IMG/VR virus record: IMGVR_UViG_3300045125_000168
Location: 1-64,000 of that record
Direction: 5' to 3' (one strand)
Length of the DNA stretch: 64,000 nucleotides
Numbering within the stretch: the stretch's first letter is position 1; the number at the start of each line of letters is the position of its first letter. Below, piece by piece: positions 31,727-63,048 of this stretch. A program made the position numbers and the translations under genes. A model generated the notes under the pieces. It was not told the DNA's origin and did not search any database. It was given only the letters and a program-made list of their open reading frames with translations.

Positions 31727-32890
31727 ATGCTTAAATATCTCTGGCTGTTTTTGGTCATAGGCTGTCAGCAGCAAGGTCATTCGGATTCGACAGAGGAACC
31801 GCAAGCTCCCGTCTCTCAAATCCCGACAGGTGCAGGTGGGAATAACAGCGGTGGTGGCAATAATGGGAATCCCTCTGTAAGCACACCCGCGAATAATGCG
31901 GCAGCAGATGAGACGCAAGAGGTCAAAATTTGGCTTGCTGGCCCTCTCCCAGGCTGCGACACCAAGAAACAGGGCGCGGCCTACTACGTGCGAGAGGAAG
32001 CTATCTTCAAATATTGTGATGGCACTACCTGGACGACCTTGGACCTAAAAGGCCCACAAGGGGCTCAGGGGGCTCAAGGACCGCAAGGACCGCAGGGCTT
32101 AAATGGCATCGCAGGAGCCACCGGACCCCAAGGGCCGCAAGGTCCGACTGGAGCGGTCGGAGCGCAAGGCCCCCAAGGACCAACAGGTGCCGCAGGGGCG
32201 CAGGGTCCACAAGGCCCAACGGGACCCCAAGGGGCTCAAGGATTGACAGGACTAACGGGACCTCAAGGGGCTCAAGGTTTAACAGGCCCGCAAGGCGCAA
32301 CCGGGCCGCAAGGTCTGCCTGGGAGTATGCGAATTTATGCGGCAAACGGTGACCTGATCGGCAACATGGCGCAGTACAATTACAGTGTGTTCAAGCAAGG
32401 CTCAGATCTCATTCAAGGGCAGCTTGTGGAACGAAATGGATATTTCGCGTTCTTCCAAACCTCTTCAACCTCTCTTGGTCTGTACGCTAATTATGGCGGG
32501 GGGCCTGCAAATTATTACTGGAATACGACTACCGCTTTGAATGGCCAGAGATTTGCCACCATGGGCTACTACACCACCGCAGATTGCTCTGGGCAAGCCT
32601 ACGCCTTTTTGACTAGCGTTGCCCCAGGCTTGGAGCAAGTCAAAAACCTTGCTTTCGCTTGGGGGTCCGGCTCTACTTATATTCCAGGCTACGACGTAGT
32701 TCGCAAAAGTCTAACTTCCTCGTCAGTCACCGTTGCTTCATACCATCGCTGCGACAATGCACCCTGCACCACACCTGAAAGTTTGACCTGCACCTCTACC
32801 AGCGGTACTTACGATGTTTTCCCCGTGCAGATCCAAGCCAAACAAGGGTGGCCAGACAAGCTAAGTGCAGGCTGGTATGTCAGCAACTAA
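31727..32890 (+). CDS. Collagen-like lipoprotein
   Basis: Lipoprotein signal (LWLFLVIGC); Cys domain LPGC...[14 protein letters not shown]; about 29 Gly-X-Y triplets (GPQGAQ...); Cys-containing C-terminal domain. Confidence 0.9.
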
Positions 32891-35699: not shown

Positions 35700-38296
35700 G
35701 ACATAACTGTTTCTGGACTTTTCTTCCCATTCGCCCAAAGATGAGTATTGTGAGGCATCCGCTTTACATTTTTCGTAAGACCACGAGGTCCACGACGAAC
35801 TAGCTTTGCAATCCCATGTAAGCTCCTGTCGTATGGATTCATGCCATTCTTTACTGGCGAGGTAGCTTCCCCGTGACTTCTTGGCCCACTCTGAAAAAGA
35901 AGAATACTTTGACGCCTCTGCTATACAATTCTCATATTTGAGCCAATAATCGATATTTTTGCGAACGCTCCACCCTAACTCCTGCGCTATCTGCTTTTGC
36001 CATTTATACCCGACCGCAGTGGCATAACTCGGGCTTGCGTTTGTTCTCCATTCTTTTATGGATGAAAATTGTTCTGCTTGTCTCTTACAAGCTCGGTACA
36101 AAAAGCATGGCTCGTGGCATGGGTCCAATCTAGCTCTTGAGCAATCTGTCCTTGCCATTTATTTTTACAGGCAGAAAGATAATCTTGCTGTTGAGTTTTT
36201 TCCCACTCCTTTAGGGATGAAAATTTTGAAGCCTCAGCTTTGCAATTTTCATAGATTCTGCCAGTAACCCGCTTTTTGCGAACTCTTCCAATTAAGCTCT
36301 TGAGCTATTTTTCTTTGGAAATTTCTTTCTAGACGCAGCATTATAACTAGATCTCGAACTTTTTTCCCACTTCCTTCAGGGGAAGAAAATTTCGATACCT
36401 CGGTTTTGCAATTTTCATAGGTCCATGTGTGCTAGTGTCTTGAAAATCCCAATTGAGTTCTTGGGCTATTACTTCATGCCACTTAATTTTACGGGCTGTA
36501 AGATAGCTCGCAGGTGAAGCTCTGCCCCATTCATGCGAAAGATGAATATTTCGAAGCCTCAGCTTTGCAATTTTCGTATTTTTCCCAGTGACCAAGCTCC
36601 TTGCGAACTTTCCAGTTAAGCTCTTGAGCTATCTGTCTTTGCCATTTATGGCTTAAGGCGATTTTATAACTGGATCTTGGCGTTTTTTTCCCATTCTTTC
36701 AAAGATGAGAATTTAGATGCTTGCCTCTTACAAGCTCGGTACAAAAAAATGGAACTTGACTCATCGCTCATTGATTGACGATCCAGTCCATCTTAGCTTA
36801 AAGACCATCCTTTTGTGATGCAAACTCGAAAGAGTCTGGATAGATCGTATTCCAATCTTCCAGGTTACGACACTTGCGTACTCATGCATGATTTCTTTAA
36901 AAATCCATGTATCAATTTCCAGCCTAAATCCTTACACACATGGCCGCCAACCACTCTTTTTATCCGCAAGATTGTAGGATTCTTACAACGCCATTCCGCC
37001 AAGCGTGAGTATCTTGATGCTATCCGCTTACAATCTTCATAGGTTGGCCAGTTGCTTGACTTTCTAATTCGTTCCATGGCTTCGCTGAGAGTAATTAACT
37101 TCTGGTCCTTGAAACATGAGATGAACGACGAAAAGGATTCGATGTATTTTTTATCAAACGTAAAGTTGATATGCTCAAGAGGTTGATTGTCTGAACTAAA
37201 ATTCGGTTGAAATTCAGGGATTTTTAGTTTGGACTTTTGACCATCCCAGGCTTCATAGATTTCCGTGACTGAAAGGGGCCAGCACACCCGCCATGATGAC
37301 TTTGAACTCGTCTACATGGTCTACAGGTGTCGCTTGAGATATTCCTTCTCAACATGACTATCTTGTGGTCGCCTACAAAGCCTTCCCAGTATTTGATCTA
37401 TTCGTTCGATATTTCGCATGAACGTCAAGTCTAATACCTGATTCAAGTTAGGGTAGTCGAACCCGATCTGGGCACGATCTACCACGATCAGTACATCAAA
37501 CTCCCATTTGCAAACTGTTTCAATATTTTAAGGTCTTTATCAGATTCGGAATGAGATACTGCAACCTTATACCTCAGAACTTGTTTTAGGCTCTTAAACA
37601 GCCGTTCTGCTGCGTCAATATTATGTGTGATAATCAAAGATTTCTGTGTTGGTTTTATCAGCTTTTTGATGCCATCAATCAGCTTTTTGGAAGTCTTTTT
37701 CTTCCTTCAATTTGCCCATCGCAGAGTAGTCATTGACCAGATCTAATGTAAACATCGTAGGGATTAACTTTACCGAGATATCTGGGATCTTATTATTTTC
37801 AAACAGTTGTTGTCTGGAGCACAAACCTTCGAGCAAATAAAATTAAAATGCGTTGCTGTGAGTAAAAGTTGCTTTTTTGGGCCAATTTTATCGATAATTT
37901 TATTGACCATTTGCTCATTATAAAATTGATGAGCTTCGTCGATAATTATGATGTCAAATTTTTGCTTTCCCCTTGAGGAGATCGAGTTTCGGATAGATTG
38001 TTTGCGGAAGACTGACAACTACAGAAAAGTTTTCGCTGCCCTTCAAGTCCGTGGCTTTTTTGATGATACAAGAAATTCAATTTTAGCGGCTTTGAAGCCG
38101 AAAAGTTCTCCCGTATCTCTTTTCGACCATGTGTTAAAACCAGAATCCTTTTTTTCTGTTTAACCCAATCCTCAATCAAAGACCAGGATAGGACCGTCTT
38201 GCCGTACCCCGTACTACCACCTAGAAGCACAACATCGTGTTTGCGAAAGAGCTTTAAAATTTTCTTTTGATCCGCTTGGATATCTGTCAGCTTCAT
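35556..38296 (-). CDS. Superfamily II (DEAH, ResIII-like) helicase fused to a C-terminal array of ~48-aa repeats; many frameshifts
   Basis: GGSTGYGKT, IIIDEAH, LLTATH and VLIVVDRAQIGFDYPNL...QILGRL, followed by repeats W-x-YE-x-CK-x-EASKYSS-x-x-EW...SY-x-x-A...W...IAQEL-x-W (35556..37040). Confidence 0.8.
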
Positions 38297-38367
38297 CTAT
38301 CAACCTACCTGCACAACCTCAAAAACCCGATTCTTAAGAGTGCAAGAAGTGTGAAAGCGTAGGGCAC

Positions 38368-38404
38368 TGACACTATTGTCTTCTGGTCGTGCCAAATAGT
38401 GTCA
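38368..38404. promoter_or_regulatory. Inverted repeat TGACACTATT-N17-AATAGTGTCA overlapping a TTGACA on the minus strand upstream of the helicase
   Basis: Perfect 10-bp arms in an intergenic region. Confidence 0.5.
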
Positions 38405-38423
38405 AAAGATTTACACATGTCAG

Positions 38424-40040: not shown

Positions 40041-41557
40041 TTATCGTCTTCGTCTTTTTGAGCTTGACGACTTCGATGCGGAATTTTTCGGTGAGATAGG
40101 CTTGGTACCTTTTTTGTACATGCCCATGCAGATCCCAGTTTCATCGACAAAATCACGGATAATCCCAAATTTTTTGGGCTCTCCGTTCTCGTTGACGTAG
40201 GGAGTTCGCACCCGCGAATACTCTTGGTAAAAGTTTCCGCTCACCTGACCTTGTTCATTGAATATCACGTTGCCCGTGGGAAACGCGGAGTAATAGCAGT
40301 TCCATCGCGGGACATCGATACCAGTGAGCATCCGAGCGTTGCTCACGAGCACTTGAATTTTCCCGCTCCGTGCATCTTCCAAAACCTCTTCGCGGTTCGG
40401 CAAACCCCCATAAAAAGCAGCGGCTCGAATACCCTCTGCTTTGAGCCGCTCGACAAATTGCTGCAACTGAGCCACGGAGTAGGAGTGGAACGCGAAACAA
40501 ATGTAGTGTCCCGCAGCCACATCTTTTTCGAGATACTGCATGATGATTTTCATGCGCTCTTTGTTGGCATACAAACGCTTGTGCAGCCGTGGGAACGGCT
40601 CGTTAAAACCAAAGGCTACTTTAATGCCAGTGTGAACCACGGTGACCGAGCACGGCACTTGCCGCGATTTGCCCTCGGCAGTCACAGGGCCGATGATGTC
40701 TCGCAACAAAACTCTCTTGCCATCAACACGCTCAACCGTCCCTGTGAGGCCGAGACGATATTTAGCTGCGAGTTTATTCACCGTCGAGCTAAAGACAACG
40801 CCACCGAGCTTATGAGCTTCATCGCAGATCACAAGACCCCAAGCGTTGGCGTACTTTTCAATGCGCTCATCTCCGTGAGTCCTGCCTGTGCTCTTTTTAA
40901 GGGCTTTGGTGCCAAAGGTCTGCCAACACAAAAAGCAGACATCCAATTCCTCGGGATTATCGTAGTCCCCAAAAAAGCCGACGATCTCGCCCCGCGCATC
41001 TCTTTTCTTGGCAAAAGGCGAGCGGTGCTTTTCGCGCAATTCCTCGATATTGGTGAAGTTCAGGAAAGTATTATAGAACTGCTGCAAAAGGTCTTTTGGT
41101 GAGCAATGATGAGCGTCTTGAGCTTGAGTTGAGACAGGATATAGATGCTGGTCACCGTTTTTCCAAACCGTGGACTAGCTCGTATCACTCCGTTTTTGAC
41201 TTTGAGCCAAGCCGAGGCCGCTTCGAGTTGACCTTTTCCGTGCTCCTGCCAATTAAAAAGCCCACCTGTGAATCTCAGGTCACTCGTCATGGGTGGAGTC
41301 GCGGTCAAGTCCTGCCAAGGCAGATCCCCAAACAGCCGACCGACCTTAGCTATGTTGCCCCTAGCAAAGCCGAAGTAGAAGTCGTCGCCAAGTTTGACTT
41401 TATTAAAGGTGCGGATTTGCCGCACACCGGAAGCAAATTGATTGAAGTCTGCCTCGTCCTCGTCATTTTCCAGACTATAGACAAATTGCGATAAAGCCCG
41501 GTCGCTGACGTATTCAACGGGCACATACAATCGGTCTGAGAGGAGACAAGACTTCAC
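40041..41557 (-). CDS. Superfamily II helicase (UvsW/XPB-like), frameshift at about 41080
   Basis: ASPRFGKT, VICDEAH, LGLTGTVERVDG, LTGIDVP, QEYSRVRT. Confidence 0.9.
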
Positions 41558-42018: not shown

Positions 42019-42614
42019 TTAATCCAATGACATCATACTAATAATAATTGTACGGCTTAAAAACTTAGCGTCTTTCTTGCCCCACAAAAGAGTTTCTCTT
42101 TTTTTAACTTCGTTCCAAGTTTTCGCCTCGAAAAGGGTTCCATGCTCATTTGTCAAATACACAAACAAACCTCTTTTTAATGCTTCTTCTGTGCGGCTCT
42201 TGGTCCATTTTTTCGCCTTCGGGAGTGTTTTCTTCACCAAGAACAACAATCCCATACCGAGGCAGCAATTCTTCAAACAAGCAGTAGACACCTAACGGCA
42301 AGCCATTGATGCGCAAACTTTGGCACTATCTCTTTTCCATATTTGTTCTAACAGGATACCCTTATGCAGAGGACGGAAATTAAGAAAAAATGATATTGGA
42401 GCTTCCGTATTGGCTTCCAAAAGACTATCGAGGTATCGTAAAGATTTAAGCTACCTTTGGCGTCCTGATAAAGGATCTCCGCTGTTTTAGATTTAAGCCA
42501 TTTTGCAGCTTCTCTGTTTTTTTCTGGGTGTACTAAATCATGCTCAAGCCGGTCTACCTGCCTTGGGGCAGAGGTGACTATGTATTTTGCTTTGATGCGC
42601 TGATTGGAATCCAT
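42019..42614 (-). CDS. Leader-like N-terminus hypothetical protein, frameshifted
   Basis: MDSNQRIKAKYIVTSA; ORFs 42348..42614 and 42019..42291. Confidence 0.45.
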
Positions 42615-42632
42615 TGTGCTTCCTCTAGGTAA

Positions 42633-42659
42633 GTATCGGCACTTAAACCAAAAACCTCA
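42633..42659 (-). promoter_or_regulatory. sigma28/FliA-like promoter
   Basis: TGAG-N15-GCCGATAC, 18 nt before ATG 42614. Confidence 0.55.
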
Positions 42660-42713
42660 AGGGTCCCCAAAATAGGCAAAACAGTAAATATTTGTTTTTA
42701 TTATACAAAGTAA

Positions 42714-42729
42714 TGTTTCACGTGAAACT
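42714..42729. other. parS: parS centromere-like site
   Basis: TGTTTCACGTGAAACT matches the chromosomal parS consensus TGTTTCACGTGAAACA at 15/16; perfect 14-bp palindromic core; intergenic. Confidence 0.75.
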
Positions 42730-42734
42730 ACTGA

Positions 42735-43115
42735 CTATTTTTTCTTGCTGCGCCTCTTTTTCAAAGCTCCCGAAATTTTGAGGCTCTCTGGGGCTACTGC
42801 CGGAGCTTTTGCTAAGAGCCACGCGAGGTCGGTGGCTTCGCAGCCTGCGTCTTGAGCAGCTTGCGCACACCCTGTCCCAAAGTGCGCCACATCAGCATAA
42901 GCATCGTAGAGGGTCTGTGCAGGTTTGCTGCTTGTGGTCTTGAGTGCATCGAGAGCCGGGTCTAGCACTTGCGTTTTGACCAGGGCCGTGAGGCTCTTCG
43001 CCGGATTTTCCTTGAGCAGACCTAGCTGCGCCTCGACTAAAAACTTTTCGAGCGCCTGGGCAAAGGCGCTCAAATTTTCAAGGCTGGTCGCTTTCTCAAC
43101 GGCTTCCTTAAACAT
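42735..43115 (-). CDS. Hypothetical protein
   Basis: 126-aa ORF, AGGAGAGG SD. Confidence 0.55.
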   Translation of the reverse strand: MFKEAVEKATSLENLSAFAQALEKFLVEAQLGLLKENPAKSLTALVKTQVLDPALDALKTTSSKPAQTLYDAYADVAHFGTGCAQAAQDAGCEATDLAWLLAKAPAVAPESLKISGALKKRRSKKK

Positions 43116-43124
43116 ACCTCTCCT

Positions 43125-44285
43125 TTATGAGCGCGAGCGGAAATCTGTGAGCAGCATGTCCAAACAATCAGCCCGCTCGTCGGTGGCTAAATGTTCTGCA
43201 TTGTCCGTGAGCCATTGCTCGATCAAAGGCTTATAGTAATCTTCGAGAGAAACGGTAGGCTCTTCAGTCGTCTGAACCTCCGAGGACACCGAACTCCCCT
43301 CGACCCCACGATCAAACTCCCAGTTGATAAGGGTTGAGGTGAAAAATTCGGGAAACTGAGTGTCCAGCACTTGATAGACCTCTGGTGCAATGGTCATTTG
43401 GCACATAATGCTTGCGGTAGAGGTCGGTGATGTGACCTAGCGGGACTTGTTCAGGAGATAGAATCCTACCAAGCTGAAAGTGCTGTTTGATGCGCGAGTC
43501 TTCGAGGGGCACTAGCTCGGGGAGTCTGTCCTGGACCCAACGGCCATCGCTACGACTTGCTTATAGACGTGCCGCAAAACGCCTTTAGGGAGCTTGTGCC
43601 CGTGGTCGAGAGTCGTGGGCGAACCGGAGTACCACACCCGTTGAGCATCGTCCAAGGCTTGGCACTTGTGAATGTCCCCCAGGAAGACACCCGCGATCTC
43701 AGGGGTCACGACGTTATTGATTTCAATATAGCCGTGGTCCTGGTCACGAGGGGGCGTCCAGCCCGTGTCGGTGACCATACGCGAGAGACACTCGTGAGCC
43801 ACGATAAACTCACACGGGATACTTTTTTAAAAGCTCTTTAAAAGACGCCTCGGAGTATCCCCCAAAGGGCACGAGCAGGAGACGCTCTTTTTGAAAGAAC
43901 AGCGGCTCACGCACACTGAGAAAAGGCGTCAACGGTTTGAACGCTGATAGGACCGAGGGGTGTTCGATATACGGCTGACGGTCATGGTTTCCGTCAATGA
44001 TGTAATAAGAAAAGTTCGCATACTTTTCTTTGAGGGTTAGAAGCGGAAAGAGAAAATGACTCATGAAGAGGACAAACTCTTCACGCAGCGTGTCTTCATT
44101 ACGATCAAAAATATCGCCTGCAACAATCAACCACACTTCACTCGCTTGATGCTCGCGCAGAGTATCTTCTGTGATGCGAAGGGATACCTTCGAGCATAGA
44201 TTGTTGCTGTTCGAGATAGTCACCGTATTTGCGGTTTTTTCCCGATGTGCAAGTCTGCCGTGTGAAGAATGATGCGTTGCGTCAT
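43125..44285 (-). CDS. sbcD: SbcD/Mre11 (gp47-like) metallophosphoesterase nuclease, frameshifted
   Basis: HTADLHIG, AGDIFD, DGNHD, VAHECL, LGDIHK, YSGSP. Confidence 0.88.
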
Positions 44286-58950: not shown

Positions 58951-58995
58951 ATATCCCCCGTGTGCGACTTGAAAAAATCTTTCACAGGGGGAGTG

Positions 58996-59083
58996 CGGAG
59001 AGAGTGGGATTTGAACCCACGTTACCCTTTTGGGGTAAACTCGCTTTCCAAGCGAGCGCCTTCAGCCACTCGGCCACCTCTCC
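58996..59083 (-). tRNA. trnS-GGA: tRNA-Ser(GGA), CCA not encoded
   Basis: GGAGAGGTGGCCGAGTGGCTGAAGGCG, anticodon arm CTCGC-TTGGAAA-GCGAG, long variable arm, T-arm GTGGGTTCAAATCCCAC, acceptor TCTCTCC-G. Confidence 0.95.
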
Positions 59084-62891: not shown

Positions 62892-62980
62892 TGGCGGAGG
62901 GGTGGGATTTGAACCCACGGACCAGTTTCCCAGTCGCGGCCTTAGCAAGGCCGTGCCTTAAGCCACTCGGCCACCTCTCC
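62892..62980 (-). tRNA. trnS-GCT: tRNA-Ser(GCT), CCA encoded; acceptor 3-prime strand one base short (probable indel error)
   Basis: GGAGAGGTGGCCGAGTGGCTTAAGGCA, CGGCC-TTGCTAA-GGCCG, variable arm, GTGGGTTCAAATCCCAC, ...CCCTCC-G-CCA. Confidence 0.92.
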
Positions 62981-63048
62981 ATCGAATGATGAATCAACTA
63001 TATCTCCCACAAAGATTTTTTCAAAGAACTTCTTGGGAGATCTTGTCG

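Follow-up and report, generated by a model that had tools for sequence, protein, structure and literature searches.

Organization of the region surrounding the palindrome

The DNA that we analyzed (the window) is a 64,000-nucleotide stretch that makes up the first 64 kb of the IMG/VR virus record IMGVR_UViG_3300045125_000168 (236,430 bp; G000 in Table 1). On the minus strand, the gene order in the region of interest is an SbcD/Mre11-like phosphoesterase, a 126-amino-acid (aa) ORFan, a short intergenic spacer, a gene that we refer to as gene X, several small ORFs, and an SNF2/ResIII helicase, which places the spacer within a replication/recombination module. The spacer contains a 16-bp palindrome, TGTTTCACGTGAAACT, that begins 5 nt after the stop codon of the 126-aa gene and ends 99 nt before the ATG of gene X. 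A TATAAT hexamer lies 8 nt downstream of the palindrome, so that the palindrome covers the -35 position of a putative promoter for gene X. However, this promoter is inferred from reading the sequence, there is no good -35 hexamer, and a consensus promoter scan did not call it. The coordinates of these and other features are given in Table 1.

Table 1. Positions of features in the window, in the whole IMG/VR record (G000), and in the adjoining part of the source contig (L numbers are retrieved pieces of these sequences)
Position	Strand	Feature
42714-42729	.	parS-like 16-bp palindrome TGTTTCACGTGAAACT; exact 14-bp core at 42715-42728
42615-42734	-	120-nt intergenic spacer between the 126-aa gene and gene X
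42700-42705	-	TATAAT (-10-like hexamer)
42735-43115	-	126-aa ORFan with a basic C-terminal tail; family used to find the relatives P0001-P0004
42019-42614	-	Gene X, split by a frameshift in the window (42348-42614 and 42019-42291); 198 aa and intact in the relative (P0005)
43512-44223	-	Calcineurin-like phosphoesterase (SbcD/Mre11-like) gene, split in the window; 382-387 aa and intact in relatives
40041-41557	-	SNF2/ResIII-type helicase gene, split in the window; 515-519 aa and intact in relatives
37100-38420		DEAH helicase gene, split by frameshifts
38135-38230		Weak CbiA hit (P-loop/Walker A of the frameshifted DEAH-box helicase)
31727-32890		Collagen-like tail-fiber gene with 9-nt and 36-nt tandem repeats (repeats at 32075-32286)
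58995-59083, 62893-62981; L017 12381-12463		Phage-encoded tRNA-Ser(GGA), tRNA-Ser(GCT), and tRNA-Tyr(GTA)
G000 about 78,700		Sharp cumulative GC-skew minimum coinciding with a switch in gene strand
G000 87182-87197 (L002 1500-1515)		Second parS-like sequence, GGTTTCTCGTGAAACG (13/14 of the core)
G000 112821-113849 (L015 12821-13849)	-	PfkB-family (heptose-7-phosphate-kinase-like) gene
G000 146580-148577 (L017 6580-8577)	-	665-aa protein made of several HTH/GIY-YIG/HNH-like homing-endonuclease and regulator modules
Record 238,190-283,433 (L225-L229)		Part of source contig Ga0494335_066 beyond the IMG/VR cut, with portal, tail sheath, SNF2 helicase, RNR small subunit, and M15 peptidase genes
L226 10001-12559; L229 805-1987		852-aa protein with a LAGLIDADG_3 domain (possibly intein-bearing); ribonucleotide-reductase small-subunit gene in two pieces next to a T5orf172/MUG113 endonuclease gene

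Several genes in the window are split. Comparison with the intact genes of the relative shows 1-nt indels next to homopolymers, which are most likely assembly errors rather than the marks of pseudogenes. Gene X is found only in the lineage that has the palindrome, and its nearest Atlas clusters are viral hypothetical proteins whose predicted structures have GNAT-acetyltransferase-fold neighbors. The possibility that gene X encodes an autoregulating DNA-binding protein is therefore not supported. The region has no Rfam match, no tandem repeats or origin-like repeats were found near the palindrome, and no phage promoter motif or repeated motif that includes the half-site was found elsewhere in the genome. 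Half-sites (GTTTCAC) are not enriched (27 observed versus 36 expected), and all others lie in coding sequence.

The palindrome matches the chromosomal parS consensus

The palindrome matches the chromosomal ParB/Spo0J site consensus TGTTTCACGTGAAACA at 15 of 16 positions, and its 14-bp core is exact. It is the only match with up to 3 mismatches in the window and the only exact core in the 236,430-bp record. The expected number of exact cores in 236 kb is 9e-4 under uniform base composition, 1.4e-3 under a second-order Markov model, and 2.6e-5 under a fifth-order Markov model that captures the CACGTG depletion of this genome, so that the chance expectation is on the order of 3e-5 to 2e-3 per record. 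The single mismatch is at the distal position (position 16), which has been reported to be tolerated and to vary naturally, whereas symmetric changes elsewhere, except at positions 5/12, abolish binding by Burkholderia cenocepacia ParBc1 (PMC5450999). Thus, at the level of sequence, the site differs from chromosomal parS only at a tolerated position. In contrast with chromosomal parS, it is not part of an origin-proximal cluster near parAB, but is a single site in a phage replication module, 36 kb from the GC-skew minimum of the record, which may mark the replication origin or a point of transcription divergence. A second near-site at 87183 overlaps the ribosome-binding site and GTG start of a gene for a phage-encoded RRM-type RNA-binding protein and is probably a coincidence, since about 0.04 such sequences are expected per record.

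The original prediction was that an intergenic chromosome-type parS site lies in a phage genome in a window that contains no parA or parB gene, and each element of this observation is confirmed by our analysis.

The DNA belongs to a jumbo myovirus that lacks recognizable partition genes in the part read

The IMG/VR record is labeled a "provirus" with 87% completeness. The window encodes a baseplate wedge protein, collagen-like tail fibers, and a DnaB-type helicase that is 32% identical to those of the jumbo phages phiRSL1, BcepSauron, and PaBG, and head-decoration-like proteins and an exonuclease are encoded further on. The record is cut from JGI metagenome contig Ga0494335_066, which is 351,605 bp long (record coordinate = window coordinate + 1759), and we followed this contig to record position 283,433. 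Beyond the IMG/VR cut, we found genes for a portal protein (phrog_16240, E = 1e-97), a tail sheath, a second SNF2 helicase, a ribonucleotide-reductase small subunit, and an M15 peptidase, and the first 18 kb past the cut show the same extreme avoidance of palindromes as the record (see below). No tyrosine integrase was found in the 236-kb record by a search for the Phage_integrase family. Based on these results, we conclude that the "provirus" boundary is an artifact, that this is a jumbo myovirus of at least 283 kb that may fill the whole 351.6-kb contig, and that the DNA is not a chromosomal region near oriC, which was one of the conditions set beforehand under which the prediction would have failed.

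In order to determine whether the phage encodes its own partition proteins, we searched all six frames of the 236-kb record with profiles for ParB_N (PF02195), HTH_ParB (PF17762), and ParA AAA_31 (PF13614), and none gave a hit at E ≤ 0.01. The one weak CbiA hit, 4.5 kb from the site, was considered as a ParA candidate but was rejected because it is the Walker A motif of a frameshifted DEAH-box helicase. The precomputed Pfam families of the genes called between record positions 226 and 283 kb include no ParA or ParB. These results apply to record positions 1,760 to 283,433 and leave out about 68 kb of the source contig. Within the part that was read, the phage does not have a parA-parB operon next to a centromere.

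The palindrome is a conserved island in a diverged spacer

The 126-aa protein has four homologue clusters, at 94, 62, 59, and 48% identity. Contigs of the 94% clade come from several independent runs and are about 85% identical to the window at the DNA level. Four of these contigs (L003, L004, L006, and L007), from four independent runs, reach the spacer, and all four carry TGTTTCACATGAAACA at the same position. Between the two phages, the palindrome block is 17/18 identical, while the rest of the spacer is 42% identical and contains a 12-15-nt indel, and the flanking coding sequence is 84 to 89% identical. The palindrome is thus the single conserved island in the spacer. However, the relative's copy has a G-to-A change at central position 9 (CACATG rather than CACGTG), which is not known to be a tolerated change, and so this copy does not fit the chromosomal parS definition that the window's site fits. 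More distant relatives lack the site: the 59% relatives have no spacer at that point, and the 48% relative has an unrelated spacer and an unrelated downstream gene. The palindrome and gene X are therefore specific to the window/L003 lineage.

Other searches for relatives gave nothing further. Megablast of the region and tblastn of the baseplate protein against cultured phages gave no match; searches of viral contigs with the two flanking small proteins, the helicase, and the family alignment found no relatives; a metagenome scan returned only the JGI contig already known; a scan of genome contigs with the family alignment found nothing; and a search for sequencing runs listed none.

The center of the site is a hexamer that the phage otherwise avoids

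The phage avoids 6-bp palindromes to an extreme degree. Of the 64 palindromic hexamers, 34 are depleted more than 10-fold in the record (e.g., GAATTC, 0 observed versus 49 expected; GTCGAC, 0 versus 66; CTCGAG, 1 versus 78; TGATCA, 2 versus 98; and AAGCTT, 5 versus 144). The nonpalindromic sequences GAGCTG/CAGCTC and GCACGC are also depleted, whereas GATC, CGATCG, ATCGAT, and TGCGCA are not avoided. This suggests a host range rich in restriction systems. CACGTG occurs 3 times versus 41.5 expected, which is a depletion of about 14-fold, and one of the three survivors is the center of the site. The G-to-A change in the relative removes exactly this hexamer while keeping both arms.

The only lead to the host is a weak one. 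The PfkB-family gene of the phage, which may be an LPS-related auxiliary gene, is closest (45 to 48% identity) to genes of Oligoflexus, Oligoflexaceae, and freshwater "proteobacterium" MAGs. Genomes of this group carry canonical parS clusters (e.g., 13 sites in O. tunisiensis), but the CACATG-centered variant is absent from the parS clusters of the five Oligoflexia-type genomes that we checked. A literature search for CACATG-centered parS was uninformative. HIP1 enrichment, which would have signaled a cyanobacterial host, is absent.

Orphan parS sites recur in unrelated viral contigs

In order to determine whether such sites are found in other phages, we scanned IMG/VR for exact matches to two 16-mers and, as one control for each, to the reversed sequence of the same composition. 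Perfect parS, TGTTTCACGTGAAACA, is present in at least 119 contigs, while its reversed control is present in 2, and the center variant, TGTTTCACATGAAACA, is present in at least 119 contigs, while its reversed control is present in 13. (The two counts of 119 are lower bounds.) The 119 loci with the perfect site fall into 108 unrelated flank clusters, and 26 of them carry two or more sites. Single sites are in non-coding-like positions 38% of the time, compared with 12% for random positions in the same contigs (Fisher P = 1.6e-8). Of 21 records of at least 27 kb, 19 lack ParB_N, all 21 lack ParA (AAA_31), and 19 lack an integrase, and 6 of the 7 that are at least 90% complete lack ParB_N. In six near-complete records, the neighboring genes that PHROGs could name are phage-type genes, such as terminase large subunit.

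The 119 loci with the center variant fall into 86 flank clusters, and the sites are non-coding-like at 50%, compared with 17% for random positions. The variant co-occurs with perfect sites in 10 loci and shares the same AA/TT flank preference. ParB_N is absent from 20 of 22 longer records and from 9 of the 10 that are at least 90% complete. Some of the contigs in either set may be misclassified host, plasmid, or origin DNA. For example, eight loci (L107, L121, L122, L147, L161, L173, L206, and L295) have 3 to 5 perfect or center-variant sites within a few kilobases, including five perfect sites in 800 bp in L122 and a variant and a perfect site 26 bp apart in L295, and these may be either true partition loci of phage-plasmids or misclassified plasmid or origin DNA. 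The window's site and its relative's variant belong to two recurrent, linked forms that are far overrepresented in phage contigs.

Interpretation of the site

The reading that we favor, as somewhat more likely than not, is that the palindrome is a functional, host-type parS, that is, a loading site for the chromosomal ParB/Spo0J CTPase clamp of the host, carried as an orphan cis-element by a phage that has no ParA, ParB, or integrase in the parts that were read. In this view, host ParB-CTP dimers would nucleate on the site in the infected cell and slide onto flanking phage DNA, making the non-integrated phage genome a substrate of the host ParA gradient and of ParB-dependent SMC loading. As the primary consequence, the phage DNA would then be actively positioned and partitioned like a low-copy plasmid carrying a chromosomal parS, for example, during a carrier or pseudolysogenic state. 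Drainage of ParB away from oriC as phage copies multiply, and lowered expression of gene X because the site covers the -35 position of its putative promoter, would be likely side effects. What our analysis demonstrates is the sequence match, its uniqueness, its conservation in the nearest relative, the absence of phage par genes in the parts read, and the excess of such sites across phage contigs, whereas the binding of ParB and every consequence that would follow from it are inferred. Against this reading are the changed center in the relative, the presence of only one site per genome, and the absence of the site from the relatives at 59 and 48% identity. The original prediction, which proposed that the phage may hijack host ParB for segregation as a phage-plasmid, for SMC loading or positioning, or for titration that disturbs host chromosome segregation, is only partly supported, and nothing in the evidence discriminates among these three consequences.

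A less likely explanation is that the conserved palindrome serves something other than ParB, such as a small RNA hairpin or terminator between the 126-aa gene and gene X or an operator for an unrelated dimeric regulator at the X promoter, in which case its identity with parS would be a coincidence brought to attention by a motif-driven scan. In relative L003, the palindrome is part of a 12-bp stem (-11.8 kcal/mol, z = -1.96) followed by a U-rich stretch, and the only central difference between the two phages is in the would-be loop, which fits an RNA or terminator reading equally well. The position of the site next to a stop codon and a TATAAT is also consistent with this explanation. In the window, however, the hairpin is weak (-3.8 to -5.1 kcal/mol, z = -0.55), with a 5-bp A/U-rich stem of -3.8 kcal/mol and no U-run, was not called by a terminator scan, and so does not have the form of an intrinsic terminator. 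A random 5-bp stem with a 4-nt loop would equal the parS core with a probability of about 4e-6, and the large excess of the same 16-mers in unrelated phage contigs is not explained by a local hairpin. The lack of a similar motif elsewhere in the genome, the lack of an Rfam match, and the GNAT-fold rather than DNA-binding-fold structural neighbors of the gene X clusters also argue against this explanation.

It is more doubtful still that the phage encodes its own ParB-like (and perhaps ParA-like) protein, either in the 68 kb outside the part read or too divergent for Pfam, and that the site belongs to an ordinary self-contained phage partition or regulatory cassette. ParB-CTPase folds are common and divergent in phages (PMC12704722), and 2 of 21 perfect-site records and 2 of 22 center-variant records do carry ParB_N. 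However, no such protein was found in the parts read, plasmid and phage ParBs normally use private centromeres rather than the chromosomal consensus (PMC5450999), and most complete parS-bearing phage records lack ParB. A chance occurrence or a neutral relic, such as a short stretch once copied from a host origin region, is very unlikely, since, although the site is a single copy that is absent from more distant relatives and was flagged by a motif-driven scan over many windows, the expectation by chance is very low, the site is an island of conservation that survives in a genome that purges CACGTG, and the flanks are phage genes with no host-like DNA.

A broader possibility, which we consider tentative, is that orphan host-type parS sites are a widespread and so far undescribed class of phage cis-element that occurs both as the perfect 16-mer and as a CpG-less, CACATG-centered form that avoids the CACGTG restriction hexamer. 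Through these sites, phages without ParAB or integrase would plug their DNA into the host ParB-CTP/ParA/SMC machinery or would use it as a ParB sink, and the jumbo phage in this window and its relative would be one instance of each form. ParB-parS is the most widespread bacterial chromosome segregation and SMC-loading system, and, in the literature that could be searched, we found no description of chromosomal-type parS in viruses that lack ParB. If host ParB loads on these sites, phages would have a one-motif way to be positioned, compacted, or inherited by host machinery or to starve oriC of ParB, which bears on pseudolysogeny and carrier states, on how jumbo phages organize DNA, and on host takeover. 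At least 108 unrelated contexts for the perfect site and at least 86 for the center variant provide many candidate phages, and the apparent conflict between keeping CACGTG for ParB and purging it to escape restriction is a specific evolutionary prediction.

Comparison with known systems

Compared with the chromosomal ParB(Spo0J)-CTP loading site (consensus TGTTNCACGTGAAACA), the palindrome has the same core and differs only at the tolerated distal position, but it is a single orphan copy inside a phage rather than an origin-proximal cluster next to parAB, and the cognate ParB would have to come from the host. Phages with their own partition cassettes, such as P1 (parABS), N15 (sopABC), and the cluster-A mycobacteriophages (parABS), are maintained as episomes through a centromere bound by a ParB. 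Those phages encode their own ParA and ParB with private centromeres, while this phage has neither in the 283 kb read and its site is the chromosomal consensus. Centromere mimicry by a mobile element that lacks par genes is already known from SGI1, which carries copies of the parS of IncC plasmids, uses the plasmid's ParB/ParA for its own stability, displaces the plasmid, and titrates the system when amplified (PMC10954446). At the level of sequence, and within the 283 kb read, the phage likewise lacks its own ParAB and carries the centromere sequence of another replicon. What differs is that SGI1 is an integrative mobilizable island that targets the private parS of a helper plasmid, whereas here a virus would target the universal parS of the host chromosome, and no Sci-like helper protein was identified. 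Finally, a chromosomal par operon together with a single chromosomal parS site stabilizes unstable plasmids (reviewed in PMC7022226), which is an experimental precedent, shown for laboratory plasmids rather than for a natural virus, that these components can partition a foreign replicon.
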